This document shows, one piece after another, positions 9,732 through 37,273 of a stretch of 64,000 nucleotides of DNA. The translations under genes and the position numbers were made by a program. The stretch covers positions 4,216,001 through 4,280,000 of the forward strand of contig OX337229.1 in NCBI GenBank assembly GCA_946965045.2, read 5' to 3'. Every line of letters begins with the position of its first letter. Position 1 is the first letter of the stretch. Source of the DNA: Epithemia pelagica (taxonomy: Eukaryota; Protista; Bacillariophyta). A model generated the notes under the pieces. It was not told the origin of the DNA, made no database searches, and worked only from the letters and a program-made list of their open reading frames with translations.

Positions 9732-10030
9732 TGTTGGAAATAATGAGCAAGAAAGAAAACACTGCAACGCGGGAACGCCTGACGAAACAAGACCAAAGAC
9801 AATGCGAGCAAGACCAAAGACAATGAAGAATATTATGGAGAATAAAGCGAGCAGGACGAGCCCCGCACGCGTGACATACGCTGACGTAGTCAGAAGAGGA
9901 AAGGCGAACAAATCGCCAACAAATGAGTCTAGAGCTCATTCTTTGGAAACAATCAAGCCAGTAAATTAGGATCATTTTCGACTTTACAGTATAGTGGGCA
10001 AAGCTGACGGCTACGACACTCTACTCAACA
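9732..10030 (+). repeat. Copia-1 5' LTR
   Basis: Direct repeat of 15723..16021; starts TGTTGG and ends CTCAACA. Confidence 0.95.
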
Positions 10031-10077: not shown

Positions 10078-10764
10078 ATGAACACTGACCCTACAGTGAG
10101 ACACCTACAAGAAATCGACGAACTCATCCAAGAACTTGCCGAACTGAGTGTTCGCCAGCAAGAGATTGTCCGAAGGCTCAAGGACCTACGAGATCCATCA
10201 TCGGCGCCCGTGGCTACCGTGCCCGTGGCAAGAGCACAGCCCAGCGGATACGAAACGGGAGACAGTGAAGACGGAGAGGAAGCGTCTGAAGAACACACCG
10301 GAACTTTCAAGACGAGTCGGGAGTCGGTCTCAAGTGCAAGCATTGCCAGTTCCACAGTTGAAGTTGTCGGCACTTTTTCCCCCAGACCAAACAATCAGGT
10401 GATCTACACTCCCGCTGAGAGAGCAGCTTTGCAATCCGGCTGCAGTCTGTGGACGTCCGACGTCACAGGGAAGCGATATATTATACACCCCAGACGACGC
10501 AAATTTTGCGTGGGTGATATCGTCAAGGTCCTGAACCCAGCCTCACGTTTTTCCACCCGTGCACCGACGATCCGCGACGGAACAGGAGTTGTGGCCAAGG
10601 TGTGCGAGAAACAAGTGGTCATCCATACCGACAGCGGTCACGATCTAAGACGAGGACAAGGCAACGTCCGTTACCTATCGGCTCAGCGGGATGAGCAATA
10701 CGCAAGGGTCCAACCCGTCAAGCCCAGGCGGCGCCCCAACTACGCCCGGTACCACGCCGCCTAA
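10078..10764 (+). CDS. Copia-1 accessory ORF0: N-terminal coiled coil + C-terminal KOW/SH3-like beta domain (228 aa)
   Basis: Open frame from ATG 10078, upstream of gag and overlapping it by 74 nt. Motifs ELAELSVRQQEIVRRLKDL and FCVGDIVKVLNP...TGVVAKV...TDSG are matched by ORF 26508..27086. Confidence 0.75.
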   Translation: MNTDPTVRHLQEIDELIQELAELSVRQQEIVRRLKDLRDPSSAPVATVPVARAQPSGYETGDSEDGEEASEEHTGTFKTSRESVSSASIASSTVEVVGTFSPRPNNQVIYTPAERAALQSGCSLWTSDVTGKRYIIHPRRRKFCVGDIVKVLNPASRFSTRAPTIRDGTGVVAKVCEKQVVIHTDSGHDLRRGQGNVRYLSAQRDEQYARVQPVKPRRRPNYARYHAA

Positions 10765-13700
10765 TGACGGCGGAACCCCAAGTTCGAGTCAAGGTAACCA
10801 AGGACGAGGACGAAGGGGACGAGGGCGCGGTCGAGGTGGACGAGGAGGACGTGGTGGTCGCGGTGGTTACGCTACCGACCCCAGTACGTTCAAAGGAAAC
10901 ACTGACAACATGAACGGTCATGTTTTTCAAGTTTTTTATGAGTGTAATGACAAGCGACAGTTTACACGAACAATTGAGGCACTAGAAGAATACTTCGCAA
11001 AGAATTTGAAGCATGCAGGAGATATGACTACTCTAACAAGAGAGCTGAAGAACCCGACAATTGAAGAACCACCGGATTTGCCCGAAGAAGAAACCAGTCG
11101 CCTCAAGGTAGCGATTTTCGAGAAGAAGGTTGCCGCATACGTGACGCGTTGCGACATCCTTGAGAGTAACCTGCAAGCGGCATATGCGGTCATATGGGGT
11201 CAGTGTAGTGAAGCCATGAAGGCCAAGCTCCAAGGCCTCGAAAAGTATAACACTGCTCGCGATACGTGCGACTGTGGTTGGTTGATGACTCAAATCAAGG
11301 CAATTCGACACAAGTTTGAAGAAAAACGCTACGGGTACTCATCACTCAACGACGCATACACGAACTTTTACATGCATCGACAGCAAGCAGAAGAAAGTCT
11401 CGCCGATTACCTCCACCAATTCAAAGAAAACATCGACGTCTTGGAACATTATGGTGGGTCGGTCGGAATTGATAAAGGCTCCCAAGAATTAGTGGAGAAG
11501 TACTTGGACCCCGACGAGTCCACTTCCTCCGATGAGAAGAAACGGATCAGTCGTGAGCGCGCCCTTGCCATCCAATTTTTAAAGGGTGCTGATCGAAAGA
11601 GATTTGGTAACTTGTTGATTGAATTGGAAAATCAGTTCACCCGGGGAACCGACCAATACCCTCCAGACCTAACATCCGCCTACGGGATGCTGGTCAGTTA
11701 CCGTGGTCCGAAGCAGGCTCCCACCGCTTCCCAATCCTCTGGGACACCAGCTTTGATCCCTGCCGGTGGTGGTGGTGGCTTACAATTTGCTCAAACCACA
11801 TCCCCTGTCCCTGGTCTCGACGGCATCCTCCATGAGAACATTACGTGTTTTCATTGTCAGGGGCCTGGTCATTACGCCAGTCAGTGCCCTCTGCGCAGCG
11901 ATGATAATGGTACTACCAGTGGGACCCGTGGTAATTCGGGCGTCACCATGCTCCAACAACATGACTCCTCCCCCTCTTCGTACAATTTCACCTTCGCCCT
12001 TGTTGATTGTTGTTTTTCACAACCACCACGATGTTCCATCCCCGACACCTGGGTTTTACTTGATAGTCAGTCGACTATTTCGGTCTTTCGGAATGCCTCC
12101 CTTCTTTCCAACATTCGGCCCTCGACCCATCCGTTGACCGTCTACACCAATGGTGGTCACCAGGTGTCCCGACTCCTCGGCGACATTCCCAACTTTGGCG
12201 AGGTCTGGTACAACCCCCAGTCCTTGGCCAACATCCTCTCCCTCGCCGCCGTTCGGCAAAGATGCCGCATCACTATGGACACTGCCGGTGATCCTTCCAT
12301 CTCAGTCCATCGTCGTGATGGCTCGGTAATGATTTTTCGTGAAAGTGCGATGGGACTTTACTATTTTGATGTTGCAGACCCGTCTAACTTTATTAACTCT
12401 ACCTCTACTCCCTATCTGTTCCTTAACTCGGTCCCTCGTAATGCGACTGGTTTTTCGCCCCGGGAGGTCGAAGGAGCGGATCGTGCCCGTACTCTGTACA
12501 GACAACTCGGTCGCCCCTCCCAACGCGATTTCCTCGACGCCCTCACCAACAACGTCATCCGAAACTGTCCCGTCACCCCCGAAGATGCACGACGCGCCCT
12601 CCAAATTTACGGACCGGACCCCGCCACCCTCAAAGGAAAGACAGTGAAACGACCAACGGCCGCCGTGCCTCAACAGACGATAACGGACATTCGCGACCAC
12701 ATCAAACAAGAACACAAGCGCGTGACAATCTGCGCGGACAATTTTTACGTCCAAGGGCTCATTTTTTGCCACACTTTTTCGAGACACATCAATTTCCGCA
12801 CCGTTGCGGCCATAGCAAACAGGCGAAAGACAACGTTGGAGCAAGAACTAAGGGATGTATTTCACCTTTACAAGTCCCGCGGCTTCGAAGTGGTAGACCT
12901 CCACGCGGACAACGAGTTTGCGCCCCTCCAAAACAGCATTCGACCAGTCATAGCCAACATCGTCGCCGCCGATGACCATGTGGGCCAAGTCGAACGATCC
13001 ATTCGCACGATTAAGGAGCGAGTGCGATCAACGGTCCATGGCCTCCCTTTCCGACGGTATCCAGTCCTCATGGTACGCGAGCTCGTATCCCATGCGGTCC
13101 GGACCTTGAACCAGCTCCCCAACCGAAAAGGAATCTCACCCACCATGAGTCCACGAAAAATCATCACTGGACTACCGGATCCTGACTACAATAGCATGAG
13201 GATAGAATTTGGGCAATATGCCCAGGTTTTTGAGGAGCGACGCAGAACAAGCACAACAGAACCGCGTACCATCGGCGCCATCGCCCTCAACCCCACTGGA
13301 AACGCACAAGGGAGCTACTACTTCATGTCCCTCGCGACCGGAGCGCGAATCTCCCGACACCAGTGGACGGAAGTACCAATCACCCAAGACGTCATCAACC
13401 GGGTGGAAGAGTTGGCAGCCGAACAAGAACAACCCATCATTAACGGCGAGCTCGTTTTTGAATGGGCACCCAATGTCCCGATCGAAGACCCTGAAAACAT
13501 TGACGATGCAGCGGACGATGACGATGAAGAAAACGACGGAAATAATGATCTCCACAACGATGAAGATGAAGGAGCGATTTCCGATGAGGACAATGAAGAC
13601 GACCCCGATGTGGACGAAGGAGCGAACGAAAATAGCTCCGACAGCGACGAACCATCGGAGCCTCCCATGGTATCAACCACGGACGAGGACAGCACAACAG

Positions 13701-14248
13701 AAGATGAATCTGATGTTGGTGCCGTCGATGAAACGGCCGAAGATGAAGGAGCGTACGACCACGACGACGATGTCGACGAGGAAGAAGTGGAAGATGAAGG
13801 AGCGCAAATTGAGGAGCGCGAGGAGTTCCCAGACGTATCTGAAGAATACGAGGATGACCATGACATGGACGAACCAACCGACAACGCCGAGACCAGACAC
13901 GAATATAACCTTCGAGGCAACCGGGAGCGATCGTACGCCCATCGGCTCGATCATCAGATGGACATGACGGATGGTGCAACCTCCTATTTACACGCGCAAT
14001 TCCTGCAACAGGCCATCAAACACGCCACAACCAACGTGAATGATCGGACACCCATCCACTCTTTGATGGCAAACTTCATTTTTACTCAGATGTCCGCGAA
14101 GGCAGGCATTAAGAAACATGGACAACGTGCTATCGATGCACTCTTGAAAGAGTTCACTCAGTTGGACAACCAAGATACTTTCGACCCACAGGATGCATCC
14201 AAATTAACCCCCCAACAAAAAAGGCTGCCCTACGATCAGTCAACGTAA
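10691..14248 (+). CDS. gag-pol: Copia-1 Gag-protease-integrase polyprotein (frame breaks at start of RT)
   Basis: RGG-rich N-terminus; zinc knuckle CFHCQGPGHYASQC; protease WVLLDSQST; integrase ICADNF/LHADNEF/QVERSIRTIKER; long acidic linker; RT N-terminus TQMSAKAGIKKHG. Confidence 0.92.
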   Translation: MSNTQGSNPSSPGGAPTTPGTTPPNDGGTPSSSQGNQGRGRRGRGRGRGGRGGRGGRGGYATDPSTFKGNTDNMNGHVFQVFYECNDKRQFTRTIEALEEYFAKNLKHAGDMTTLTRELKNPTIEEPPDLPEEETSRLKVAIFEKKVAAYVTRCDILESNLQAAYAVIWGQCSEAMKAKLQGLEKYNTARDTCDCGWLMTQIKAIRHKFEEKRYGYSSLNDAYTNFYMHRQQAEESLADYLHQFKENIDVLEHYGGSVGIDKGSQELVEKYLDPDESTSSDEKKRISRERALAIQFLKGADRKRFGNLLIELENQFTRGTDQYPPDLTSAYGMLVSYRGPKQAPTASQSSGTPALIPAGGGGGLQFAQTTSPVPGLDGILHENITCFHCQGPGHYASQCPLRSDDNGTTSGTRGNSGVTMLQQHDSSPSSYNFTFALVDCCFSQPPRCSIPDTWVLLDSQSTISVFRNASLLSNIRPSTHPLTVYTNGGHQVSRLLGDIPNFGEVWYNPQSLANILSLAAVRQRCRITMDTAGDPSISVHRRDGSVMIFRESAMGLYYFDVADPSNFINSTSTPYLFLNSVPRNATGFSPREVEGADRARTLYRQLGRPSQRDFLDALTNNVIRNCPVTPEDARRALQIYGPDPATLKGKTVKRPTAAVPQQTITDIRDHIKQEHKRVTICADNFYVQGLIFCHTFSRHINFRTVAAIANRRKTTLEQELRDVFHLYKSRGFEVVDLHADNEFAPLQNSIRPVIANIVAADDHVGQVERSIRTIKERVRSTVHGLPFRRYPVLMVRELVSHAVRTLNQLPNRKGISPTMSPRKIITGLPDPDYNSMRIEFGQYAQVFEERRRTSTTEPRTIGAIALNPTGNAQGSYYFMSLATGARISRHQWTEVPITQDVINRVEELAAEQEQPIINGELVFEWAPNVPIEDPENIDDAADDDDEENDGNNDLHNDEDEGAISDEDNEDDPDVDEGANENSSDSDEPSEPPMVSTTDEDSTTEDESDVGAVDETAEDEGAYDHDDDVDEEEVEDEGAQIEEREEFPDVSEEYEDDHDMDEPTDNAETRHEYNLRGNRERSYAHRLDHQMDMTDGATSYLHAQFLQQAIKHATTNVNDRTPIHSLMANFIFTQMSAKAGIKKHGQRAIDALLKEFTQLDNQDTFDPQDASKLTPQQKRLPYDQST

Positions 14249-14271
14249 TCAAGGAGAAACGTTGTGGAAAG

Positions 14272-15960
14272 TTGAAGGGACGTTCATGTGCGGACGGTCG
14301 ACCACAACGGACCCTGTACGACAAAAGTGAAACCGCATCACCAGCGCTTTCGGTGGATGCCCTCATCATGTCCCTCGTCATCGACGCACAAGAACGACGA
14401 AAGGTTATCACGGCCGACATTGCCGGTGCCTATCTCAACGCCTATATGAAAGACTTCGTTCTAATGCGACTGACAGGAGAGGTCGTTGACATTTTTTGCA
14501 AACTGGACAAGAAATACGAGAAGTACGTCGTCATAGAGGATGGCGTGAAAGTACTATATGTACGCCTCAACAAGGCGCTATACGGATGTGTACAATCCGC
14601 ATTGCTTTGGTATGAATTGTTTGCGTCGACTCTGAAAGAAATGGGTTTTGAGCTAAACCCTTATGATCCGTGTGTCGCGAACAAGATCATTAACGGCAAA
14701 CAGTGCACTATCACTTGGTATGTGGACGATCTCAAGGCGTCCCACGTGGAAGAAGAAGTCGTCGAACAAATTATCGACACGATCGAGGCAAAATTCGGGA
14801 AGATGACAGTATGCAGAGGAAACAAACACACGTATCTAGGAATGAACATCACAATCAACGAAAACGGCACGGTCAGCATCCTAATGCCGCAATACATAAA
14901 GGAAGCAATCGAAATGTTCGGTGAAGACGTGTCCCAAGGAGCATCCTCACCTGCAAAGAAGGGCCTTTTCAACATCAAAAGTGCGCCCGATTTGGATCCG
15001 AAACGGAAGGAGAAATTCCACAGCATCGTCGCCAAACTGCTCTATTTGTCACAAAGGTCAAGAATTGACATTCAAACGGCAATCGCTTTCCTCTGTACAC
15101 GCGTTTCAAAGGCCACCACTGAGGATTGGGACAAACTCAGACGAGTGCTTCAGTACTTACATGCTACCGAAGAGATGGAGTACATCGTGGGAGCGGATGA
15201 CGTCCCAAACCTTCTCAACTGGGTGGACGCATCATTTGCGGTGCACGAAGACATGAAAAGCCACACAGGAGGCGCGATGTCACTGGGACGAGGTGCCATC
15301 ATGGCAAAATCAAGGAAGCAAAAACTTAACACGAAAAGTTCTACGGAAGCGGAGGTTGTTGGGGCCAGTGATTACCTCCCGAATACCCTATGGGCTAAAC
15401 GGTTTCTCGAGGCCCAAGGGTACGATATTAAGAGCACACGCTTTGCACAAGACAACCAAAGCGCTATACGACTCGAGAAAAATGGAAGGGCATCGGCAGG
15501 AAAACAATCAAGGCATGTGGACATCCGATATTTCTTCATTAAGGATCAAGTCCAACAAGAAAAGATCGACATCCACTACTGCCCCACCGAGGAGATGCTA
15601 GCGGATTTCTACACAAAACCACCACAAGGAGCACTTTTCAACAAATTCCGAGACGTACTGTTGGGACACAAACCCATCAGCACTCTACAAACACGCGACG
15701 TCCCCACGTCTTGTGAGGAGCGTGTTGGAAATAATGAGCAAGAAAGAAAACACTGCGACGCGGGAACGCCTGACGAAACAAGACCAAAGACAATGCGAGC
15801 AAGACCAAAGACAATGAAGAATATTATGGAGAATAAAGCGAGCAGGACGAGCCCCGCACGCGTGACATACGCTGACGTAGTCAGAAGAGGAAAGGCGAAC
15901 AAATCGCCAACAAATGAGTCTAGAGCTCATTCTTTGGAAACAATCAAGCCAGTAAATTAG
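14272..15960 (+). CDS. pol: Copia-1 reverse transcriptase-RNase H (continuation of pol in the -1 frame)
   Basis: KGRSCADG, ADIAGAYLNA, KALYGCVQSALLWY, WYVDDL; RNase H VDASF/TEAE/QDNQSA/LADFYTKP. The frame reads on through most of the 3' LTR. Confidence 0.93.
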   Translation: MKGRSCADGRPQRTLYDKSETASPALSVDALIMSLVIDAQERRKVITADIAGAYLNAYMKDFVLMRLTGEVVDIFCKLDKKYEKYVVIEDGVKVLYVRLNKALYGCVQSALLWYELFASTLKEMGFELNPYDPCVANKIINGKQCTITWYVDDLKASHVEEEVVEQIIDTIEAKFGKMTVCRGNKHTYLGMNITINENGTVSILMPQYIKEAIEMFGEDVSQGASSPAKKGLFNIKSAPDLDPKRKEKFHSIVAKLLYLSQRSRIDIQTAIAFLCTRVSKATTEDWDKLRRVLQYLHATEEMEYIVGADDVPNLLNWVDASFAVHEDMKSHTGGAMSLGRGAIMAKSRKQKLNTKSSTEAEVVGASDYLPNTLWAKRFLEAQGYDIKSTRFAQDNQSAIRLEKNGRASAGKQSRHVDIRYFFIKDQVQQEKIDIHYCPTEEMLADFYTKPPQGALFNKFRDVLLGHKPISTLQTRDVPTSCEERVGNNEQERKHCDAGTPDETRPKTMRARPKTMKNIMENKASRTSPARVTYADVVRRGKANKSPTNESRAHSLETIKPVN

Positions 15961-16021
15961 GATCATTTTCGACTTTACAGTATAGTGGGCAAAGCTGACG
16001 GCTACGACACTCTACTCAACA
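15723..16021 (+). repeat. Copia-1 3' LTR
   Basis: Direct repeat of 9732..10030, followed by the TSD TCGTG. Confidence 0.95.
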
Positions 16022-16445
16022 TCGTGTTGTTATCGCGGTGGAAGGAATGAGATATGCCGGCCGACTGGAACCAGGAAAAAGGTATGGGGGTGGTTCACAG
16101 AAACTACAACCTCAAAACCACCCCCGCTAGGGGGTAGAGGGATGAGGGCTGACGGATTTGACACCTTGGTGTCAAGACCATGGGGGAGATCCAACGGAAC
16201 TGCGTAGGCATCCATTCTGATCTCCCCGCTCGGGATTGTGGATCACCCAACGCGAACATCTGCTTTGCTTTCAAGTCCATCTGTCACGCGATAGATATAG
16301 CCATCGTCTTGTTGTGTAAGCGTTGACTTCGCTCACTCAACTCCACCGCTGAGCCATTCGATTTACGTGTTGTCAAAAACACCAAGCTCCATCATATTGA
16401 AAACATTCGCGGACGTGTACGAACCTATATCTACCGAATCCAACC

Positions 16446-16994
16446 ATGTCCTCGTTATCATCATTCCTCTTGGTGATCCTGGCTGCTTCCCCGGCAACGA
16501 TACAGGCATGGGGGCGACCACTTTTCTTTGAACCCATGCGTAGCAGCAAGGGTGGGGGCTTTGGAAGGGCCACCACTTTTATTCAAGCCTCCCAACGGCA
16601 TTCCCACACTCATGAACAACATCAGGACGATGAGGAATTGGAGCACGTTACGGTTGCGGACAGCAGTAACCGAGCAGTCGTGAAACAGAAAAAGAGCACT
16701 ACCCTCTTCAACGACTTTTTGGATAGTCCAGGTGGAGGCGGATTGATTGGAGAATTATTTTACCCTGAACCGCTTCTTTGGCAACCCATTACGAACGAGG
16801 ATGATGAGGAGGACGAAGATTATTCTTTGGAGAACGATGAAGATTTCTACGTGGATGACATGGTAGATTGTTATATTTCCGAGGAATTCAAGGTGGATGA
16901 GAAAGTGGCGGCCGAAGCCTTTGAATATCTTGGAATCAAACGAGTGGAGCCAATTCCACTACCGTCCTATGAAACGGTTGGGGAATTCGAGTAA
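16446..16994 (+). CDS. Hypothetical 182-aa acidic protein with signal peptide, possibly plastid-targeted
   Basis: Hydrophobic N-terminus MSSLSSFLLVILAASPATIQA-W followed by a basic/Ser-Thr stretch, then an acidic C-terminal part. Clean ATG-to-TAA ORF. Confidence 0.6.
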   Translation: MSSLSSFLLVILAASPATIQAWGRPLFFEPMRSSKGGGFGRATTFIQASQRHSHTHEQHQDDEELEHVTVADSSNRAVVKQKKSTTLFNDFLDSPGGGGLIGELFYPEPLLWQPITNEDDEEDEDYSLENDEDFYVDDMVDCYISEEFKVDEKVAAEAFEYLGIKRVEPIPLPSYETVGEFE

Positions 16995-17774
16995 AGCCGC
17001 ACGAAAGAAGGTGACGCTGAAGATGAAACCAAAGTGTCTCGCACGATGTGATGCGCAGTAAATTACATAATGGATTGCCGAGATCCTCGTACCGCTCCAT
17101 GAACCCCGTTTTATTTCCAAAACTCTTGGTTGATGAATGAGCCAGCAATCGCTGATACCATGTGCTTTTCCCCCTTGCATGGCAATGCTTTCATTATGGT
17201 GAAGAGACCACGAGACGTGCAACGAATGTTCGGCAGCAAGCCCTCTTGACAGTATCATAACTTCTTACAAATATGAAGAAACATGGGTCAAACTCGATAT
17301 CGCTGATGAATCATACCCAAGAGTACGTTCCTCTCAAGGATTGTCCCATGTATTAATACACTTTATAAACTTACATTAGACCTTAGCTTCATTGCTGTCT
17401 CACCTCGGTAGATTCACAATCGTAGCGCAGATTTTTTAGTCTTTTGACAAGAACTATATATCACGCCGCGACAGGGGTGAAACATGTGACTTTGTTTTCG
17501 ATTTGGATCGATCACCACGTTCTGTGGTTTTCCGATTGTCGAAAGATAGTTCATCCTCAATCACCAAATAATTGAAGTGATCCGAATCCAATCAAAAGTG
17601 AACGATACGTCCATGTGGAAATGCAATCTATTTGTGCAGTAAGCAACGAATGGTCAAACTGAAAGGAAGGCCTCAACTCTCAAATTGATGTCAACATGCA
17701 AACGATTCAAAAGTGTTACAGATCAAGTATACTTTGGAACCGAACCCGATATCGCTTCTTTCGTGATGACATTT

Positions 17775-19196
17775 CTACATGTCACGATCCGGTTCTGCGG
17801 CATTCTGACTGTTGGTAGTGGTAGGAGGTGACAGCTTGGTTGTGCCTGTCGTGGTGGTGCTGTTGCTGGACGCTGTCGTAGAATTTGCAACAGAAGTCTC
17901 AGAAGATGTTTCTTTCAGTCCCCAATCTTGCGCAACGTTAAAGAGCAAAGTGGGATTGCGAAGAGGACCTCCAAGAAAGGTCATAATTTCGTGACATTGG
18001 GCCCATTCTTCGATTTGTACGACGCTTCCACCATAACATCTTCGGACCAGCCATTCAATCGCATCAAAGGGTGCAACCTTGTCGGCCAAACAGGCATGAA
18101 TCTTGATGGGAATGATAGGAGAGGACGACGGTTCTTGTGTATTTTGGTTGTCGCCATTTTCCACAACAAGTCCGCAGCCACTTTGTTGCGCAAAGACATC
18201 ACAGACACGAGATTGCCAGACAGGGCTCGTACCTAACCGTGCATCGATTGGCATAGCAAGTCGAGTCCAACCAGCCTCTTCCATTTCCATGGCGACTCGA
18301 CACATTTCTTGATAATCGTCAGGGTCCTTCCAATCTCCCTTTTCCTTTTCGGAATCGGAAAACAGCGACTCCAAGGTGGACGGTTTCAGAAAGAGGGGCA
18401 TGAGAGTGGATTTGAGACTGGCGGCTAAACCGGTGGAAGCCCGCAACATCCAACTCCCTACGGCATGTCCCAATCGGGCAATTCTCCACGAATCCGGACA
18501 CAGTGTACTCGCAAACGGAGCAACCATGGTTAGACCGCATAATTCTATATCACCACCATTTCCACCAACAGTTCCGTCCTCCTGTTTGGACGGCAATAGG
18601 CGAAGCGCTACCTGGACCGCAAAAGGATGTCCCAAGCAAATGGGCAACAAGTACACCTTGGTTTTGCGGCTCCCCTTGTTCTCGTTGCTATGATGATGTT
18701 GCAACACATCTAGCACATCTTGTGCATGGCATTGGATACGTTGCAAGTATCGTTCTCCGGGGGAAAGATGTCGTCTTCGGGGTACGTCTCCGCCAGTGAC
18801 ATTTTCATCGCTGTCGTTGGTATGGAACGGAACATCTGACGTGACACCAGCCAATGGGCGATCCACCACCAACACATTGGCCTGCAACGAGTCTAAGGCA
18901 CCGGCGCGATACAAGGATTGTACGATCATACTGCAACCGCTCATGGCAGGAAACATAACGATAGTCTTGTCTCGGTGAATGGGATCCGACGGCAAGGACA
19001 GGGCATAACCAATCCGTCTCTTGACCTCCTCATTTTTGTTGTCTGGACTTGTGTTTGTGGTTTCCAGAGTGTGAAAAATAGAAGGATCGCTGTCCATGAT
19101 GGACTCAACCTTATTGGACGGCATGGTACTATCGGATTGACAGGAGAGGCAAGAATCGGATGAATTCGCTGCTATTTTGGAGAAAAGAGATGTCAT
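17775..19196 (-). CDS. Alpha/beta-hydrolase-fold protein
   Basis: Strand/loop pattern TIVMFPAMSG, LVVDRPLAGVT, HAQDVLDVL, VYLLPICLG (nucleophile-elbow position), LTMVAPF, IHACLADKVAP, CHE. Confidence 0.75.
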   Translation of the reverse strand: MTSLFSKIAANSSDSCLSCQSDSTMPSNKVESIMDSDPSIFHTLETTNTSPDNKNEEVKRRIGYALSLPSDPIHRDKTIVMFPAMSGCSMIVQSLYRAGALDSLQANVLVVDRPLAGVTSDVPFHTNDSDENVTGGDVPRRRHLSPGERYLQRIQCHAQDVLDVLQHHHSNENKGSRKTKVYLLPICLGHPFAVQVALRLLPSKQEDGTVGGNGGDIELCGLTMVAPFASTLCPDSWRIARLGHAVGSWMLRASTGLAASLKSTLMPLFLKPSTLESLFSDSEKEKGDWKDPDDYQEMCRVAMEMEEAGWTRLAMPIDARLGTSPVWQSRVCDVFAQQSGCGLVVENGDNQNTQEPSSSPIIPIKIHACLADKVAPFDAIEWLVRRCYGGSVVQIEEWAQCHEIMTFLGGPLRNPTLLFNVAQDWGLKETSSETSVANSTTASSNSTTTTGTTKLSPPTTTNSQNAAEPDRDM

Positions 19197-19494
19197 GACA
19201 AGGATGTACCGTTACAAAAAAGATTTTTCCATGATCAAATTGCAAAAGGGCGGGTTAGCTACTTTCGTAGCTACGGCTAGCTGCTAGGAGTAGCTATGAG
19301 CAGGTACTCCTCTAGGTCCTCGTGACAACCGATGTAGAGCATCCGGCGAAAGACTCATCTCCTACCTACCTAATTGCAATCTTGACAGAATCTCGTCAAC
19401 GCTTTATAGAGACATTTCCTCTAGAGCAGAGTTGAGGAGTACACATGGGCCTGGAACAAACAATAATTTAGATAATATTTCAGGATTATATCGT

Positions 19495-21663
19495 TTACCA
19501 CCCAAGTGCCAATTCAAGAATAACGCGTCGAAAAAAGGGAATCGACACAGTAACCGTGGCAGCAGATGCGGTCAATGCCATGGCAATGGCCGCAAAGGGA
19601 AAGGCATCGGGTTCATCGGCAATGGCGGCTGTACCCAAACCATGAGCGGCAGCTCCCATACCCATGCCACGAGCGACGGGGTTGCGAATGCCCAGAGCAT
19701 TGAAAATGGCGGCTCCAAAATTAGCCCCAATCAAGCCGGTGACCACAACCATGGACACGGCCATACTCACATTGGCGCCCAAGATGCGGGCAATCGCCAT
19801 GGCCAGAGGGGAGGTAATGTTTCGAGATAACAATGCCAATCGTAAAGTTGGGTCACCAATTTCCAACCATCGAACCAAGGCCGCAGTGCCAAATACACCA
19901 CCCACGGTCGAAGTTGCAATGGCAGCCCCTACTTCGCCAATATTGTCGCGCATCAACTTACGTCGTTCATACATGGAAACGGCCAAAGACACCACAGCCG
20001 GTCCCAAACAATACAAGAGTACCTGTCCCGCTCCAACAGCAAACGGCAGAGGAGAGAGTGTTGAGGTCGATCCAGATCGGTACAATCTCAAGACAGACTG
20101 AAAGGAGGACATGCCTGTCAAGAGACAAAAGGTTGCCAAAGTCGTCCATGTGATGGCCGTACAGGTCAAGAGGGGATGGATCCATTTGGTAATTTGTTTA
20201 GGCAATCGAGTTCCATAAACAAAGGAACTCAGCGTGGTACACAAGAAGAAGAGTGTTGTAGTTGCGGGTGTCACGAAGGACCATTGTAACCAGGAGGACA
20301 GCGTGGCTGTGGATCCAAAAATGGTACTCAGGGATACCAGGATATAAAACACTTGGTTCGAAAAAGGACCCCTTTGGGTTACCAGAGAGGTTGTCGCGTT
20401 GGTTGTAGTAGTGACAATCGCCGATGATTCGGCTGCCGTCGCGTTGACTGTTGATGGTTGGGTTGCATCAGCATCAGATTCTACCTCTGCAGTTGCCTCG
20501 AGCAATTCCGTCTCTGTTTCGTTATCATCCGCGACTTTGTTGGTCGCATCGTCTGGTGGCAACGTTTCGTCGAGGTCGGTTTTCGTTTCGTTGTCATTGC
20601 CTTCTTCTTCTTCTTCTTCCCCCTCCTCCTTAGCTTCTTCAATTTCGGCGTCAATCACAGAGGGGGTTGTTGATGAGGAGGAAACCGATTCTACGACCGT
20701 CGCATTCGCACTATCGCTTTTGCGGCCAGATGAATCCAACAGTGTCCCAACTTGTCGGACACAGACCACTGAGAGTGCCGTCGACAGTAGGGTAAAGAAA
20801 AATCCACCCACAACAACTGTCCCCACCTTGATCCATTCCAACAGCGACCCTCCTCCACCCCCTCCGCCAGAAGCCAACGGCAGGGTGACCAAGGAGGGGA
20901 CGAAAAAGACTGGCAACCATTTGGCCAACAGGGCCGCACCGGGTTGCAATGAGGCAAAAACTTGGCTAGCCGTTTCTGGTTGCACTAGCAACAAGTACAG
21001 AAACAAGGCTCCACATCCTGCTAAACTGCTGGGAAAGGTGAATTGTAAAATGGTAAACAATCGCTTAAAGACATAATCCAAAGCAAACAAGAGCAAAGCT
21101 GAAACGATTGGAAATTTCGTTACTCGATGTAGTAACGACGAGGAGGATGACGACGATGATGAAACCAACGACGAAGAGGATAGCTGAAGCACTGAAGTTG
21201 ATTGAGATTTCGTTCTCGATGCCAAGACACGGGATCCGGCCGCCGACGACCGCAACCATGGCCGCATGGCCAAAAGTCGACTGGGAATCATCCTTGTAGC
21301 AATCGTATTCGCGACATGGCATGATGATGGCGGTGCGAGTCGTCTTTGATCTTGCCTTCGCCCTTGTTCAATGTATGGTTGTTTTGCGTTTCTGGAAAAC
21401 AAGGAAGTGCGCCCTATTTCATCATCGGATGGTACTTTTGGTTGTACTCGTTTCTGGCCTTGTTGCAAAGGCTGTTGGTGGTACGGGTGTCGTTGCGAAT
21501 GAATTGTTGTCCTGGTAGGAGCAAAGGCCATCGAGACGCATGATGGCGAAGAAGAGGATGATATCAGGGCGGTGATTGTCACCACCACTAGGCACACTAG
21601 AAACAAACCCTCGACTCTCTTCCCATACAAACAACCATGCTCCCTCTTACTGCTCTGGACCAT
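19495..21663 (-). CDS. PLGG1: Plastid LrgA/LrgB-fusion transporter (PLGG1-like glycolate/glycerate translocator)
   Basis: Signal peptide ending ...CVSMAFAP (diatom ASAFAP-type), then a transit peptide. LrgA-like FPSSLAGCGALF...LAKWLPVFFVPSLV and LrgB-like GPAVVSLAVSMY...LSRNITSPLAMAIA...ARGMGMGAAAHGLGTAA segments are separated by an acidic linker. Confidence 0.9.
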   Translation of the reverse strand: MVQSSKREHGCLYGKRVEGLFLVCLVVVTITALISSSSSPSCVSMAFAPTRTTIHSQRHPYHQQPLQQGQKRVQPKVPSDDEIGRTSLFSRNAKQPYIEQGRRQDQRRLAPPSSCHVANTIATRMIPSRLLAMRPWLRSSAAGSRVLASRTKSQSTSVLQLSSSSLVSSSSSSSSSLLHRVTKFPIVSALLLFALDYVFKRLFTILQFTFPSSLAGCGALFLYLLLVQPETASQVFASLQPGAALLAKWLPVFFVPSLVTLPLASGGGGGGGSLLEWIKVGTVVVGGFFFTLLSTALSVVCVRQVGTLLDSSGRKSDSANATVVESVSSSSTTPSVIDAEIEEAKEEGEEEEEEGNDNETKTDLDETLPPDDATNKVADDNETETELLEATAEVESDADATQPSTVNATAAESSAIVTTTTNATTSLVTQRGPFSNQVFYILVSLSTIFGSTATLSSWLQWSFVTPATTTLFFLCTTLSSFVYGTRLPKQITKWIHPLLTCTAITWTTLATFCLLTGMSSFQSVLRLYRSGSTSTLSPLPFAVGAGQVLLYCLGPAVVSLAVSMYERRKLMRDNIGEVGAAIATSTVGGVFGTAALVRWLEIGDPTLRLALLSRNITSPLAMAIARILGANVSMAVSMVVVTGLIGANFGAAIFNALGIRNPVARGMGMGAAAHGLGTAAIADEPDAFPFAAIAMALTASAATVTVSIPFFRRVILELALGW

Positions 21664-22180
21664 CCTTCTTGTCTAGCAGGTGATTGATCGCTCCGTGGTC
21701 GGGAAGTGTTCGATCACACTTGGCTATAATATTTTCGCTTCTTCCTCGCTGCTGATGGACCGTAACACTTGCAATGTGTTGGGCCATGGAAAAGAGGTTG
21801 ATGTCAAGAGACGTGCGTTGATCAAAAAGATAGGCACCCCGAAAATTCTCTAAGGGGAAAGGAAAAGGGGCGTACTTCCGGATTCCATATCTTCCCCCTG
21901 CCCCCGAATGCGAGATAAGGATGCAGATTGCCACGAAGTTCTGTACGTATTCTCCATATCAGTGTACAGACTTTTATTCGGGCTTTTCTTGGAGCATCCA
22001 AACGCGAATCCGGAACAACGATCCAGCTTCCGGATCACCTGTTTCCGAGATGCGCACCCCCAACTCCCACCCCCTTCTAATGTCGACGATTGACGATGGA
22101 GAGGCACTATCCAGTGTCATAATTCGAGTCAGTGAGATCTCTCGGTCTCGGCCCTGCATAAGTTCAAACCCTAAATCACC

Positions 22181-23098
22181 ATGGCGAAACACGGTGGAAA
22201 CTTTTGGAAGATATTGTTGTGCGCCTTTGGCGTTAGCGCTATGGTTGTCATGTACAATTCTTGGGCCCATTCGAAGCGACGAGATGCCATGGAAAAGGCG
22301 GAGGCATACCATTTCTTTTCCGAAATGAACAAAGGACACGAGTCCGCAGCTGTTGCCCCCGCGGACTCCAAGTTGGAGGGTTGGGAAGCTCTGGTTGGTT
22401 TCTGGCAGGGGACACTGGCAGATGAACTTCGCCTCATTTATCGCGTAACTTCGAAGCCCGGTCAAGTCTACTTGTATAGCTTGGACCAGCTGGGCTACAT
22501 GGTGGGAGCCTCTTCAACCTTTTATGATTCCCAACAGGGAGATCTTGCTTTCTGGTTCTCCTCTATTGACGGGGTCCACCGTGCCAAGCTCGATTCTAGC
22601 GGCAACCGCATTGAAGGAGTTTTTATGCAAGACAACAGCAAGTTACCCCTCGAAATGGTTCGGTTCGTGCCTACCAAAGAGCACACGGTTCCTCGAGAAT
22701 ATGAATTTGTTCTGAACAAAATCATGAGTGGCGATGTTGAAAAGCTTGTCAGCATGGAGGGTTACTGGCACGGTTACCTTGATGATAGTTTTGATGAGGA
22801 TGAGGAGGAACCGCCTGAGCTTGTGATCATGGAAATGGAAAAGATCACTGAAACCCTCGTGGAACCCAAACTTTTCTTGCCCGATGAGACCCCCTTGCCC
22901 ATTTGTCTTCGCAGCGTTGTGGTAGAAGGAGCCGCTGTCAAAATTGTCTTGGATGACAACCACAACAATGCCATTTTTAAGGGCCTTCTCGACGAAGAAC
23001 AAACCCACATTTCAGGTACTGTCCAATACGATGATGTGGATTTCACCCCTGCGTTGACGTTGGTCAAGTCCAAGAATCGCCCCTACAAGAACCAGTAA
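22181..23098 (+). CDS. Membrane-anchored hypothetical protein with two tandem beta-rich repeats
   Basis: N-terminal hydrophobic anchor (ILLCAFGVSAMVVMY). Two internally similar ~100-aa units begin GFWQGTL and GYWHGYL. Confidence 0.75.
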   Translation: MAKHGGNFWKILLCAFGVSAMVVMYNSWAHSKRRDAMEKAEAYHFFSEMNKGHESAAVAPADSKLEGWEALVGFWQGTLADELRLIYRVTSKPGQVYLYSLDQLGYMVGASSTFYDSQQGDLAFWFSSIDGVHRAKLDSSGNRIEGVFMQDNSKLPLEMVRFVPTKEHTVPREYEFVLNKIMSGDVEKLVSMEGYWHGYLDDSFDEDEEEPPELVIMEMEKITETLVEPKLFLPDETPLPICLRSVVVEGAAVKIVLDDNHNNAIFKGLLDEEQTHISGTVQYDDVDFTPALTLVKSKNRPYKNQ

Positions 23099-23566
23099 GC
23101 AAGTAAAATATTCTCTTAGTAGTATTGCAATTGTTGTTACGTTTTGGAATGTACGAGGAGAGAGAAACTTCGTTTAGGCACGCGCTACAGAACAGAAGAT
23201 ATCATTTGCTACTCAAGTATTGTGATTGCCTAGTCATGACAGGATGTTGATTGATGGTTTCATTGTTTAACAGGATTCTCATGACTTGATACCCAGGATT
23301 TGCGCAAGGCAACAACAACTATGGTATAGGAGTGTAACTATTATCTATGGCGGTGAGATGTAGGAGTAAGTAGGAGTAGAGCAGATAGCGCGAAATGACG
23401 ACCTAAACGCGAACAAGGGAGCACGTTGAAAATTGATTTGTGCTGCCAATGGCGACGGCGACAATGGCCTGAACTGTTGCGGTTGAGAAACAATGTGTTG
23501 AACGGTTCATAAGACAAGTTGTTCGAGGTGGCTGTCGACACTATCGTCCGACATACATCCCGCCTC

Positions 23567-24631
23567 ATGAATTCGAGCACATTACAAGGACGACAGAAAC
23601 AGGCTATTGTCGATCCACGAACAACAACATCGTCGTCGACTTTGTCCTTGGACGCATCTGTGGCCATTGTGGGAGCTGGATTTGCAGGTTTGGCCTTAGC
23701 CAATGTACTGAAACGAGAAGGTAACTCCTGTACTTTATTTGAATCCAAGACCGATCCGGTTCCTCGAACGGTGGGTCAAATCCAGTTACCCTTTGCACGA
23801 CAGTTGCTTGAACACTTGAATCTTTGTCATGGAGACACTAGGACCATTCCATTGCGCTCCCTAGACCAGTGCAACGAGAAGGGCTCATTCAATCAAGACG
23901 TCTACGAACAACACCTGTTTTTGCAACTCCTGCGAAACCAAGTTTCCATTGAGTATGGCTTTAGCGTGACGGACTTTGACGTGGTGATGGTGAATGAGAA
24001 TGGCCAGGCTCTGGCAAAGAATGGTGCAGCGGGTGTTAAACAGTCGGATCTGAGTTTACGCTCTTGGTTTTGCTTGCGAAACCGTGAAACTGGTCAGGAA
24101 TGGGGTCCCTTTCATACGTTAGTGGTTGCCGATGGATTATTGGGATCCTTTTCCACCGAACTCATTCGAGCTTGGACTCAACGCTTGAAGAACAATCTCA
24201 ATCTCAACACTATGAACCCATGGTTGCAGATTCAAACTGCGCTTATTGGTGATGCTCGATGGGCTCACCAACATGTTGGGTTTTGGGACTTCGGGCAACG
24301 GCGTCGACGTTTTGGAGGCAATGTAGCCTTGAGAGATGCCATGGAAGTGGCTACACTCCTTGCACAAGGCGCGTCTACAACAACGGGTGCTGTCACATGC
24401 TCTTCACAGCCGAGTGGAAGCACGTATGGCCAACAGCAGGAAAAGAAGCTCACTAGTCGTATTGGGTCGTTGTCGTTAGAAAAGTGGAACCATGTGATGG
24501 GCAAGTTTCATCCTCAATTCGTGGCGACTCAAATCCTCCAACGACGCCATCGACAACGACAATGGACCATCGGCCTAGTGTTGATCGTATTGGCTGTGTT
24601 GCTAGGAGGAAAAGCTCGCTCTCATTTTTAG
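23567..24631 (+). CDS. FAD-dependent oxidoreductase/monooxygenase-like protein with C-terminal TM anchor
   Basis: VAIVGAGFAGLALA...LFE dinucleotide fold, LVVADG and LIGDA motifs, FGGNVALRDA, and a hydrophobic C-terminus WTIGLVLIVLAVLL. Confidence 0.8.
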   Translation: MNSSTLQGRQKQAIVDPRTTTSSSTLSLDASVAIVGAGFAGLALANVLKREGNSCTLFESKTDPVPRTVGQIQLPFARQLLEHLNLCHGDTRTIPLRSLDQCNEKGSFNQDVYEQHLFLQLLRNQVSIEYGFSVTDFDVVMVNENGQALAKNGAAGVKQSDLSLRSWFCLRNRETGQEWGPFHTLVVADGLLGSFSTELIRAWTQRLKNNLNLNTMNPWLQIQTALIGDARWAHQHVGFWDFGQRRRRFGGNVALRDAMEVATLLAQGASTTTGAVTCSSQPSGSTYGQQQEKKLTSRIGSLSLEKWNHVMGKFHPQFVATQILQRRHRQRQWTIGLVLIVLAVLLGGKARSHF

Positions 24632-24885
24632 CTTTGTACAACTTTTTGTCTGCGTTCATGACCACAAGCGGTTGCTGGTTCCTTCAGTTTCTGTACAGGA
24701 TGGCTTTGTGGTGGTCTGTACTAAGGTCATTTCCTGGTGGCACTTTTGTTCGTACATTCTCATCATGATCAAGCCCTCTAGCTCTCGAGGCAACCGATAC
24801 CGATAGCTTACCTATTGCTATGATTGCTATGTATGGGGACAGGATTCTGGAGAACTTTGTGTCACTACCGAGCGGCCCAATATTT

Positions 24886-25389
24886 CAATCCGCCTGCCCT
24901 CGGCGAATTGCTTGCTAACGCTGCAGTCCTTTGGTAGCTTTAGGGAAAGACTCCGCTGGTTGGTTGTGGCTTCTGATGACTAGGAGTCATCGGGAGCCTG
25001 CCAACAGCGGAAACGCTGAGGAGTAGATCATCGGGATCTAACCCTCTAGCGTCTGCACCGGGAGGGAGTGGTGGGACCAACAGCAAACTTGATAGAGATT
25101 GCGTTGCTCCAAAAACTCTGAGCTCCATGGCTGCTGTTGGCAGACTCCTAGACATAGCTAGTGTGATCTAGCTAGACTACGTGTAGCTACCTGAGTGTCC
25201 TGTCGCTGACGCACACAATCCGCCTGCCCTCGGCGAATTGCTTGCTAACGCTGCAGTCCTTTGGTAGCTTTAGGGAAAGACTCCGCTGGTTGGTTGTGGC
25301 TTCTGATGACTAGGAGTCATCGGGAGCCTGCCAACAGCGGAAACGCTGAGGAGTAGATCATCGGGATCTAACCCTCTAGCGTCTGCACC
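24886..25389 (-). repeat. 3' terminal B1-A2-B2 repeat block of the YR retrotransposon
   Basis: 24886..25059 equals 25216..25389; 25076..25215 equals 33945..34084. Confidence 0.95.
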
Positions 25390-25506
25390 ACATGTCTTTG
25401 CCTTGACTAGCCACCACAGCTGACTGCGGAGTGTGAGGGAGTAGCCGATAGGACAATTGGAGGGCGTAGGACATGGGCACAAAGATACGGTTGCGGAAGA
25501 GGTGAG

Positions 25507-26511
25507 ATGAGTTCTGCAGCTCGGAGAACAGAAGAAAGCGAAACGACGGCTGAACAACTGGATCGTTTAAAAACAGTTGTCGAGGCACAACGCAAAGAAT
25601 TGCACGGCGCTTTAGGAGGAGTGGATATCGCGCAAACAGAGCTGGATAAGACTCGCGTGTTGCACGCCCAAGAGCGTCAACATTTGGAAGACGTGCATGG
25701 CGGAATACTTGCATCCAAAGAGGCGTCGGTGATTCAGACGCAGAAAAACGTGCGAGAGTTGGTGGGCGACCATCAAGCGGAGATCGATCGACTAGTGACC
25801 CGTGTGTGTGAGACTTTTGCGGAGGAGGGAGGAGACGGGGAAGACTTCGTGGAAATGGTGTTTCGACGAGCATCTCCAAGCAACAAGAAGGTCGTGGTGG
25901 CTCTGGAGCTGTTGTTTCCGCACCCGGAAGACCAAGAAGTCGTTTTCCACCAGATTTGTGGATTGGCCTTGGCTGGCGGACGGGAAAGGCCTTCTGCAGA
26001 GGAGGTTGTGGAACAAAAAGTGGCCGTTGTTCGTGAGTTGTTCGCGCAGAACTCTGCCCGCCGTGGATTGCCTGTGCCAGTTCCCGGAGGGAGAGCCGCG
26101 ACGGCTGCCGCAGCAGCCGACCGAAAAGATAAGAAACGCGAGGCGGGTAAAAAGAGGTCCGAAGGGAAAGGAGCTGGTGAAGCGTTTTCGAAGCGCGAGA
26201 AGCGTTCTTTGGAAGAGTGGTTGGGCCAACCGGGTTTCAGTACCCTACCCAAGAAGCAGCGCAAGGGCAGTACCCCTGTGAAGAGGGGCGCGAGTGTGTC
26301 GCCCAAGGAGAAAGGCCTGGGGTCGATCAAGGAAACTCTCACAAGGGAGAAATCGATTAAGGAAACTCCTACGAGGGAGAATACGGCGACTAGGGAAAAC
26401 ACGGCGACCGAGGACGAGCCGTTGTCGTGGAAGAAACATTTACCGGAAGTGGTTGTCCTGTCTGGCGATTCGTCGGGACGCGCGTCGAAGTTGGAATCAG
26501 ACAGTGAATGA
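25507..26511 (+). CDS. YR-element antisense accessory ORF A (334 aa, coiled coil + basic low-complexity tail)
   Basis: Long open frame with heptad-like N-terminus and a short tandem repeat (SIKET.TRE, NTATRE). Its stop overlaps the next ATG (ATGA at 26508-26511). Confidence 0.6.
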   Translation: MSSAARRTEESETTAEQLDRLKTVVEAQRKELHGALGGVDIAQTELDKTRVLHAQERQHLEDVHGGILASKEASVIQTQKNVRELVGDHQAEIDRLVTRVCETFAEEGGDGEDFVEMVFRRASPSNKKVVVALELLFPHPEDQEVVFHQICGLALAGGRERPSAEEVVEQKVAVVRELFAQNSARRGLPVPVPGGRAATAAAAADRKDKKREAGKKRSEGKGAGEAFSKREKRSLEEWLGQPGFSTLPKKQRKGSTPVKRGASVSPKEKGLGSIKETLTREKSIKETPTRENTATRENTATEDEPLSWKKHLPEVVVLSGDSSGRASKLESDSE

Positions 26512-27086
26512 AGATGGAGGAGATGGCCGAGTTGATTGACGAGCTGGATCAGATGGCGGATAGGCAGGCTCAAATGGCCGAGATCATGGGAGAGTTGGGA
26601 CGGATGGCCGAGAGGCAAGTGGAGATCTCTAGACGATTGCTTGAATTGAAGGAATTGGCGGAGAGGAGAGTGCAGCAGGCGATTAATATGGTGGCGGCAG
26701 CGAACGCAGCTGTGGCAGACGGAGGAGGAGGGGGGGAATGGGAGCCCGATGGAGTAGGAATGCGAGAGGGCACACCACGGGGCCGAGAGGAAGGGTCGAC
26801 GGCCCGTGGAGGAAGATGGGGATGGCGAGTGGCAAGCAAAGGGGTGGGTGGACCGAGTCCCCGTGGACGTACGAGTCCACGAGCACAAGGTGGATTTCGG
26901 GGTCGGCGGGCGAGCCGCGGATCGGAGGAGCGTTTCAAAGTTGGGGAGCGGGTTCGGATTCGAAACCCAAACGATCCCGCTGACCCAACTGGGCGGGTGG
27001 TGAAGGTAACAGACGCACGTATCCACGTGGAGACCGACAATGGCGTGCGTTATTCTCGAGCGGACAAGAACATAGCGAGGATTTAA
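26508..27086 (+). CDS. YR-element antisense accessory ORF B: coiled coil + RG-rich linker + KOW/SH3-like domain (192 aa)
   Basis: ELGRMAERQVEISRRLLEL and FKVGERVRIRNP...TGRVVKV...TDNG match Copia-1 ORF0. Confidence 0.75.
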   Translation: MKMEEMAELIDELDQMADRQAQMAEIMGELGRMAERQVEISRRLLELKELAERRVQQAINMVAAANAAVADGGGGGEWEPDGVGMREGTPRGREEGSTARGGRWGWRVASKGVGGPSPRGRTSPRAQGGFRGRRASRGSEERFKVGERVRIRNPNDPADPTGRVVKVTDARIHVETDNGVRYSRADKNIARI

Positions 27087-27154
27087 GGTTGGAGCGGACG
27101 AAATAGTGATACCATAACAGAATAGTGAGATACATTTGATGTGAATAGTGGTAG

Positions 27155-29863: not shown

Positions 29864-29920
29864 TTCATCAGACCACGGCGAACGGGCGCAAGTCGAACCT
29901 GGGCGATGATGTGCCGGTAG

Positions 29921-35840: not shown

Positions 35841-35868
35841 GTAGAATCATTTAACTATAGTAAAGACT

Positions 35869-37047: not shown

Positions 37048-37273
37048 TGTTTTGCCTAATAACAATTCTATGATCCTAGGACTAAAGCAATCTACATGAG
37101 GACGATGGTGGATGATGGTGGATGGAGGTGGAGGATGGTGGACGATTGTTGGATGAATGTTGGATGTTGGATGGAGTTCATTGGGGGATAGATGGCATGA
37201 AAAAGGTGAAAACGGCGCGAAGCATGAATGTAGACCTTATGCCCTTAGTGTGCTGGCGTGCGCTTTGAGTCTT

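Follow-up and report, generated by a model that had tools for sequence, protein, structure and literature searches.

The Two Elements of the Locus

We analysed a stretch of 64,000 nucleotides (nt) of the diatom Epithemia pelagica (assembly GCA_946965045.2, contig OX337229.1, positions 4,216,001 to 4,280,000), hereafter the window, which carries two retroelements of different orders, i.e., a Copia element and a Ngaro-like element encoding a tyrosine recombinase. Each contains an open reading frame (ORF) for a small protein, which we call ORF0 in the Copia element and ORF B in the recombinase element. An original prediction, made from the sequence alone, had proposed that both ORFs encode one accessory protein family. 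The ORF list, the long terminal repeats (LTRs), and the split direct repeats of the Ngaro type place both ORFs where this prediction had put them. The best overall explanation, in which we have good confidence, is that the two proteins belong to a single family whose gene is the first gene of a Copia lineage, was probably captured by the Ngaro-like element, and would act in trans.

The Copia element is 6.3 kb long. Its two LTRs, its zinc knuckle, and its Copia-type reverse transcriptase (RT) identify it as a Ty1/Copia LTR retrotransposon, and the window copy is very young and probably defective. The zinc knuckle was found by Pfam in the first gag-pol ORF (zf-CCHC, E = 1.6e-5). The integrase domain rve was unmatched in this ORF at E ≤ 0.01, and the placement of RVT_2 in the last ORF agrees with the Copia order. 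ORF0 has an open frame of 228 aa, counted from its first ATG, and starts at a distance of 48 nt from the 5' LTR; its final 74 nt are shared with the beginning of gag-pol, which is read in the +1 frame. Word-seeded protein searches with ORF0 returned matches that are all unnamed, come from ENA assemblies, and are 46–97% identical to it. At 14248–14272 of the window, the Copia pol is divided into two ORFs in different frames, a short piece being gone relative to the related element L053.

ORF B, with an open frame of 192 aa, lies inside a 9.2-kb element whose coding strand is the minus strand, where it is antisense and tail-to-tail with the tyrosine recombinase gene. Copies of this repeat unit that are 97–99% identical are present at at least nine other places in the 60.5-Mb genome, and on the minus strand its repeats follow the order A1-[ORFs]-B1 A2 B2. 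On inspection, the recombinase ORF contains the Arg, His-x-x-Arg, and Tyr motifs, and its look-alikes in the atlas (0.96) belong to eukaryotic Phage_integrase clusters; a Pfam search and a PDB sequence search with this ORF were blank. Every other copy found has 1162 bp extra at the deletion junction (Table 1). Since this deletion removes the RT core while the recombinase, ORF334, and ORF B stay intact, the window copy is a non-autonomous derivative. The piece that it lacks, present in L054, extends the frame into a 737-aa protein; the sites that do not vary among 21 homologues agree with RT motifs A, B, C, and E and with the Asp/Glu/Asp/Asp set of RNase H. No Pfam RVT match was obtained in any of the 21 proteins scanned, and the sole PDB match is the Ty3 RT/RNase H chain 4ol8, which is weak (E = 1.2). 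The closest named relatives come from the diatom Mayamaea pseudoterrestris. The RT-RNase H protein (L054:81-2291, alignment A6) has about 50 homologues in public data, of which two are named, both from this species; none of them matches the Pfam RT models, which leaves this lineage invisible to standard RT-based annotation.

ORF B is the second gene of a two-gene antisense cassette. The stop of the first gene, ORF334, overlaps the start of ORF B by 4 nt (26508–26511), and homologues of ORF334 that are 41% identical occupy the same place, ahead of the barrel ORF, in the diverged recombinase-element lineages L052 and L055. Pfam, PDB-sequence, and atlas searches gave no relatives of ORF334, and by BLASTP, it is unrelated to the Copia gag. 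Word-seeded protein searches with ORF B retrieved two unnamed proteins from ENA assemblies, at 93%. Between 26000 and 34000 of the window, the GC skew is strong (+0.31 to +0.43), the coding (minus) strand of the element being C-rich. The long, overlapping, Pro-rich ORFs of the minus strand (29683–32259, 31619–34024, and 25773–27026) may be partly artefacts of this skew. The ORF1 of the element is putative.

Table 1. Positions of the two retroelements and their parts in the window.
Feature	Positions	Strand	Basis or remark
Copia 5' LTR	9731..10030	+	300 nt; direct repeat, 100% identical to 15722-16021
ORF0, first gene of Copia, helix-linker-barrel family	10078..10764	+	ORF list; ratio of non-synonymous to synonymous substitution rates (dN/dS) 0.11-0.19
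ORF0 N-terminal helix, residues 5-38	10090..10191	+	AlphaFold, predicted local distance difference test (pLDDT) >90 in central blocks; foreign-only helix profile
ORF0 core barrel domain, residues 139-200	10492..10677	+	foreign-only domain profile; modelled beta strands
Copia gag-pol, first part	10691..14248	+	zf-CCHC match; 39-55% identical to the gag-pol beside foreign members
Copia pol, second part (RT), after frame break	14272..15960	+	RVT_2, E=1.7e-17
Copia 3' LTR	15722..16021	+	pair of 9731-10030
Ngaro-like tyrosine-recombinase retroelement, internally deleted copy	24886..34084	-	extent of the shared repeat unit
Split direct repeat A1, 5' end in element sense	33945..34084	-	140 nt; 100% identical to 25076-25215
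Split direct repeat B1	25216..25389	-	174 nt; 100% identical to 24886-25059
Split direct repeat A2	25076..25215	-	140 nt; matches A1
Split direct repeat B2, 3' end of element	24886..25059	-	174 nt; matches B1
ORF334, first gene of antisense cassette, unknown protein	25507..26511	+	ORF list
ORF B, second gene of antisense cassette	26508..27086	+	intact in 9/9 full-length matches
ORF B barrel domain, residues 139-192	26922..27083	+	foreign-only profile; AlphaFold
Tyrosine recombinase ORF, 470 aa, convergent with ORF B across a 68-nt gap	27155..28567	-	motifs; atlas look-alikes
Junction of the 1162-bp deletion that takes out the RT core	28762..28766	-	comparison with other copies
RNase H-like remnant ORF	28177..28797	-	Asp/Glu/Asp/Asp positions invariant in 21 homologues; weak match to 4ol8

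Homology of ORF0 and ORF B

On direct comparison, the two proteins are weakly similar (pairwise BLASTP, 24% identity), and ORF0 and ORF B do not find each other when the genome is searched in six frames (E ≤ 0.01). Profiles made from the Copia copies nevertheless score 25–28.5 bits on the whole of ORF B, where 5000 shuffles, whole-sequence or segment-wise, reach at best 10.4–13.8, and 20.4–23.0 bits on its C-terminal domain (shuffles, 8.1–9.5). A foreign-only domain profile, composed of 125 foreign domains and including neither ORF0 nor ORF B, gives 65.9 bits for the domain of ORF0 (a stretch of 75 residues, 10492–10716) against a best shuffle of 14.5, and 62.7 bits for that of ORF B against a best shuffle of 12.6, with 3000 shuffles each. 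Judged by these profile scores, the C-terminal domains of ORF0 and ORF B are homologous beyond reasonable doubt, and the shared domain that had been predicted stands far above what shuffled sequences produce. A similarity due to chance or composition would be in keeping with the pairwise BLASTP value (E = 5e-4) and with the helix of ORF B, which scores no better than shuffles. However, two barrels that both exceed 60 bits on a profile holding neither of them, and the intermediate sequences of the same genome that connect ORF0 to ORF B, leave this explanation practically no probability; for the C-terminal domain, it is already refuted.

The situation at the N-terminus is different. The Copia-copy profiles give 12.1–14.6 bits on this part of ORF B, i.e., not above composition-matched shuffles (11.6–15.0), and the foreign-only helix profile gives −1.1 bits, again not above shuffles. 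The same helix profile reaches 35.0 bits on ORF0 (shuffles ≤ 11.1) and 28.7 bits on a diverged recombinase-element copy, L055:1803-2333(-) (shuffles, 10.3). Where the family helix would lie, ORF B has a helix that is longer and diverged. Because the L055 copy, which belongs to a diverged recombinase element, keeps the family helix, we consider that the predicted helix of ORF B is best read as a diverged version of it at the same position. The original prediction had pointed to an N-terminal motif with 10 of 20 residues in common: these identities are literally present, but the ORF B helix as such does not rise above shuffles. As had also been noticed, the linkers are unrelated, that of ORF0 being acidic and Ser-rich and that of ORF B Arg/Gly-rich.

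A Family That Opens a Copia Lineage

A profile of nine members was searched against 1.84 billion cluster representatives and matched 438 of them at E ≤ 0.001 and 33 at E ≤ 1e-10, each match representing a cluster at 50% identity. For the members whose source names were looked up, nothing beyond "hypothetical protein" was found. The proteins are about 100–250 aa long and, in the sequences read and in a consensus of 152, have nearly throughout the same build, i.e., an N-terminal helix, a variable linker, and a C-terminal barrel of five strands. The helix is amphipathic and conserved, comprises ~35 residues, and begins within the first ~10; the linker is disordered; and the domain consensus starts with Gly-Asp-Arg-Val, contains a Thr-Asp-x-Gly turn, and ends with Arg-Ala-Pro-x-Asn. 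One foreign member (P0086, L070) appears by eye to have two tandem barrel domains past the usual N-terminal helix. The family profile also matches 16 repeats of a 1319-aa protein of the fish Metynnis hypsauchen (P0012, KAL6486449.1), which are Mind bomb SH3 repeats according to Pfam (SH3_15, E = 7e-71); this shows that the match is a cross-reaction of the profile with SH3_15 barrels and that P0012 is not a true family member.

Contexts were recorded, as the original prediction had suggested. In eight of the nine foreign contexts with readable flanks (L056, L057, L058, L059, L060, L062, L067, and L069), the gene stands directly upstream of a gag-pol gene that is 34–55% identical to that of the window. 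Within the genome, a profile search found the family at 53 places, the flanks of most of which were read (over 1.5–8 kb for the Copia-type and recombinase-type copies). About 25 places are of the Copia type, in sublineages 37–100% identical to ORF0, and each has gag-pol next to it on the same strand. The family is thus the regular first cistron of one widespread Copia lineage, and the view that neither kind of element normally has such an ORF does not hold, the Copia elements of this lineage having it regularly. The ninth foreign context (L064–L066) consists of three short contigs in which no element ends are seen and whose source runs have neighbouring accession numbers. Here, the member P0052 directly follows a Mutator-like transposase and precedes a PHD-like ORF (L064:1-3287), the transposase call relying on an atlas value of 0.93 and on a weak Pfam match to the RNaseH-like domain of ZSWIM1-3. 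A Mutator-like DNA transposon may therefore be a third class carrying the gene, which we regard as a lead and not as a finding. In metagenomes, a locus scan with P0019 alone gave no loci, and a scan with alignment A5 gave two: L062, the Copia context already mentioned, and L063, matched in the helix part alone, beside which no Copia or recombinase-element protein was found.

About 11 further places of the genome are copies of the ORF B element. In all of them, as well as in the diverged recombinase-element copies at C7:3207295 (L052) and C6:884747 (L055), the barrel ORF is convergent with the recombinase, which in these two is 47–49% identical to that of the window; at least three diverged sublineages of the recombinase element keep the barrel ORF. 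Apart from four in a tandem array, the remaining places are short fragments, two of them close to fragments of recombinase-element DNA. No free-standing host copy of the family was seen among the places with flanks read. The array lies at G000:C6:1673288-1705270 (L042–L050), where at least four tandem units with a period of 10,510 bp each contain a frame-broken relative of ORF B (~40% identical); the short flanks of these relatives, including 1.2 kb downstream, showed no recombinase.

Selection on the Protein in Both Elements

The original prediction had proposed that the protein is kept under selection, and dN/dS is low in both elements. For ORF0, the values of Table 1 were obtained at a synonymous divergence (dS) of 0.13–1.2; for the copies of ORF B, dN/dS is 0.13–0.61, mostly 0.13–0.35, on few changes. 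The variable sites of ORF B are distributed as 14/5/20 over the three codon positions, and those of ORF334 as 19/18/34. The patterns of ORF0 and ORF B are those of a protein under purifying selection in the Copia as well as in the recombinase element. The conservation of the predicted protein across sublineages whose recombinases are just 47–49% identical is, in our opinion, a stronger argument for selection than dN/dS.

It is on this point that the reading of ORF B as a functionless relic, i.e., the remnant of an old nested Copia insertion that has been carried along, can be judged. The 3' region and the opposite strand are a place where a nested insertion would be tolerated, and the foreign relatives of the recombinase element are without the gene. 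However, the ORF is intact in nine of nine full-length copies, its dN/dS is mostly below 0.35 with second codon positions the least variable, and its protein is conserved between the distant sublineages just mentioned. Moreover, its partner in the cassette is another conserved antisense ORF, one without a counterpart in Copia, and no LTR or gag remnant is visible next to ORF B. We therefore hold a relic to be very improbable. The Copia protein raises another question, namely, whether ORF0 is an N-terminal extension of Gag, made by programmed frameshifting or read-through. Every Copia context has ORF0 ending inside or just before the gag-pol frame, and in L058, where the two frames are identical, one stop and one codon separate them. 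The junction is tight throughout, with an overlap of 4 to 86 nt or a single stop between the two genes, yet the relative frame from ORF0 to gag-pol differs, being +1 in the window, L053, and L059, −1 with a 4-nt overlap in L069, and in-frame in L058. This combination, with no single conserved recoding signal, argues for ORF0 as a separate, translationally coupled cistron and not as a recoded extension of Gag. In addition, many foreign members stop a few residues past the barrel, and the protein of the recombinase element stands alone, with its own stop and no gag after it. A Gag extension is thus quite unlikely.

Origin of the Copy in the Recombinase Element

Among the foreign relatives of the recombinase element, three are complete in their 3' regions (L072, L073, and L074; RT-RNase H ~40% identical) and contain no family member in any frame; the contig of a fourth, L071 (51%), ends inside the recombinase gene, before the expected place, and is uninformative. 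Recombinase-element copies of the gene were seen in this genome and, as one degenerate copy (L061), in a related assembly, and nowhere else. A short tail past the barrel (Arg-Asp; Arg-Arg in L052) is common to the Copia-type and recombinase-type copies of this genome and is missing from ORF B and from most foreign members. A family tree (146 rows, 118 columns) is largely unresolved and groups the members of this genome with eight foreign ones in one cluster, with a support of 85% in the Shimodaira–Hasegawa-like approximate likelihood-ratio test (SH-aLRT). Since the gene is regular in Copia, since the foreign relatives of the recombinase element are without it, and since the tail is common to both types, capture from a resident Copia is the simplest account. 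The distribution of the sequences hence makes it probable that the donor of the gene in the recombinase element was a Copia element of the same host lineage. The original prediction had spoken of a module exchanged between elements; if a symmetrical exchange was meant, one-way capture from Copia is simpler.

Fold and Possible Function

In the AlphaFold model of full-length ORF0, residues 5–38 form a helix, residues 41–96 are disordered, and a beta-rich domain follows at moderate confidence. The domain of ORF B, modelled with an alignment of 134 sequences, has five strands (pLDDT 90.4; predicted template modelling score 0.72). With Foldseek and VIA-align, it superposes on small SH3-like barrels, with template modelling (TM) scores of 0.73–0.84 and Z values of 8.0–8.5 over 49–54 residues, which bears out the KOW/SH3/Tudor-like pattern that had been recognised in the C-terminal sequence. 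The neighbours comprise PWWP, chromo-barrel, the KOW domains of Spt5 and NusG, the Tudor domains of PHF1, PHF19, TDRD3, and SMN, NdhS, and the REP of Mind bomb, and no family stands out. Among the 134 domains scanned, no family member reached a Pfam gathering cut-off, ORF0 and ORF B themselves being blank. Sub-threshold matches were to MS_channel_2nd (50/134 domains), Phage_ProQ_C_like (34/134), NHase_beta_C (29/134), SH3_15 (PF18346; 23/134, best E = 0.00022, with neither ORF0 nor ORF B among them), and KOW (PF00467; 11/134, best E = 0.0016), and Sm-like families are found there as well. In a search for a methyl-lysine cage, the consensus offered one conserved Phe ahead of strand 1 and no other conserved aromatic residue. 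The barrel is mildly basic, the domain of ORF B having a net charge of about +3 when counted by hand. A two-copy complex prediction of residues 1–45 of ORF0 scored 0.07, which is evidence in neither direction.

How could such a protein serve two so different elements? We infer that it acts in trans, because its gene is found in three different genetic layouts and, in the recombinase element, could not be translated from the sense genomic RNA. The helix would mediate self-association, and the basic barrel would bind nucleic acid, most likely the transcripts of the element; the outcome might be a help with RNA stability, export, or packaging, as with other retroelement accessory proteins. This model of a self-associating helix and a barrel binding element RNA is built on analogy, and we put it forward tentatively, as one possibility. 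With the same family and the same capture, the protein could instead be an adaptor directed at the host, its barrel binding a component of chromatin or transcription so as to target integration or counteract silencing. The three layouts (a sense 5' cistron, an antisense 3' cassette, and the place beside the Mutator-like transposase of L064–L066) fit an element-agnostic function in trans; Tudor, PWWP, chromo-barrel, and the Spt5 KOW are among the structural neighbours; and the Mutator lead is better accommodated than by an RNA-binding role. On the other hand, there is no conserved aromatic set able to make a methyl-lysine cage, the structural matches are unspecific (Z about 8, with many families tied), and the Mutator link comes from three short contigs of adjacent-accession runs in which no element ends are seen. 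We regard the adaptor as conceivable but doubtful. More broadly, the helix-barrel gene could be a roaming module, repeatedly exchanged among at least three unrelated transposon classes (Copia, Ngaro-like, and Mutator-like), that solves a problem shared in stramenopile nuclei, which could be the evasion of silencing or access to transcription or chromatin; this seems to us unlikely.

Several points weigh against our explanation of one family, opening a Copia lineage, captured by a Ngaro-like element, and acting in trans. The sample of contexts is small, with nine foreign family contexts and three informative foreign recombinase elements, and the direction of transfer follows from distribution and not from phylogeny, as the tree names no donor. 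By its own sequence, the N-terminal helix of ORF B is not demonstrably homologous to that of the family. It is by motifs that the RT of the recombinase element can be identified; because no profile recognises the L054 protein, the status of this element as a retroelement depends on these motifs and on the repeat layout. ORF0 and ORF B are predicted proteins, and the antisense transcript of the recombinase element is predicted too. As for function, many unrelated small-barrel families match the model equally well, so that the predicted fold gives no function; the acidic linker of ORF0 fits poorly with simple RNA binding; and a trans-acting role on RNA leaves the member beside the Mutator-like DNA transposase unexplained.

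Besides Gag and Pol, retrotransposons encode few accessory proteins, most of which are specific to a lineage. The present family is large, conserved, and wholly unannotated, and it marks the 5' end of a Copia lineage common in environmental eukaryote sequence. Its co-option by an element of a different integration chemistry, on the opposite strand, constitutes a natural experiment: as it is retained in the recombinase element, the protein would have to work in trans, independently of an integrase, of LTRs, and of translation from genomic RNA. The family provides a handle on the persistence of mobile elements in diatoms, a profile for annotation, and a small, well-folding domain for biochemistry.

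A Neighbouring Repeat Family

Immediately past the recombinase element, positions 34164–37065 of the window hold a different repeat family, which also occurs on contigs C3, C5, C10, and C18. It encodes a 438-aa ORF (34524–35840, +) and a 398-aa ORF (35869–37065, −), and by eye the latter resembles a DDE transposase of the PIF/Harbinger type, for which it is a candidate.

Comparison with Known Systems

The first cistron of the bicistronic RNA of the L1 retroelement encodes ORF1p, which combines a coiled coil with nucleic-acid-binding domains, i.e., an RNA recognition motif (RRM) and a C-terminal domain (CTD). The folds are different, RRM and CTD in ORF1p and a small barrel here, there is no homology, and the element classes differ. 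The ORF0 of primate L1 provides a precedent for an ORF on the antisense strand of a retroelement. The barrels of Spt5/NusG KOW, PHF1/PHF19/SMN Tudor, PWWP, and Mind bomb REP have the same five strands, but the present family has conserved positions of its own and an obligatory N-terminal helix; it reaches no Pfam cut-off and has no aromatic cage.

The element carrying ORF B resembles the Ngaro elements of the DIRS order in its split-repeat layout and gene order. Those described, for instance, in the stramenopile Cafeteria burkhardae have the structure A1-[ORFs]-B1A2B2 and three sense ORFs, in the order ORF1, RT-RNase H, and tyrosine recombinase (PMC8547959). The lineage of the window differs from them by an additional two-gene antisense cassette past the recombinase and by an RT that Pfam does not recognise. 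CERV, of the Caenorhabditis elegans element Cer1, is likewise an accessory protein apart from Gag and Pol, and it is involved in the nuclear export of the genomic RNA and co-localises with it (PMC10309623). It is made from a spliced mRNA of a Gypsy-type element, and a sequence relation to the present family is not expected; the analogy is a functional one.

A parallel is found in bdelloid rotifers, where additional ORFs are common to LTR retrotransposons and to Penelope-like Athena elements (Rodriguez, Kenefick and Arkhipova 2017, PMC5408684). There too, the same type of accessory ORF occurs in different retroelement classes, which the authors read as modular gene sharing (PMC5408684). ORFs common to more than one retroelement class have thus been described before, and the principle is not new (PMC5408684). 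What appears to be undescribed, in Pfam, in source names, and in the papers found, is the family itself, as the original prediction had supposed, together with its role as the characteristic opening gene of a Copia lineage and its persistence in a two-gene antisense cassette of a Ngaro-like element. The rotifer ORFs are enzymes (a GDSL esterase and a DEDDy exonuclease) or env-like, and are located as ORF3 (PMC5408684). In the algal host studied here, by contrast, the shared protein is a small non-enzymatic helix-plus-barrel, encoded 5' of gag in Copia and antisense in the recombinase element.

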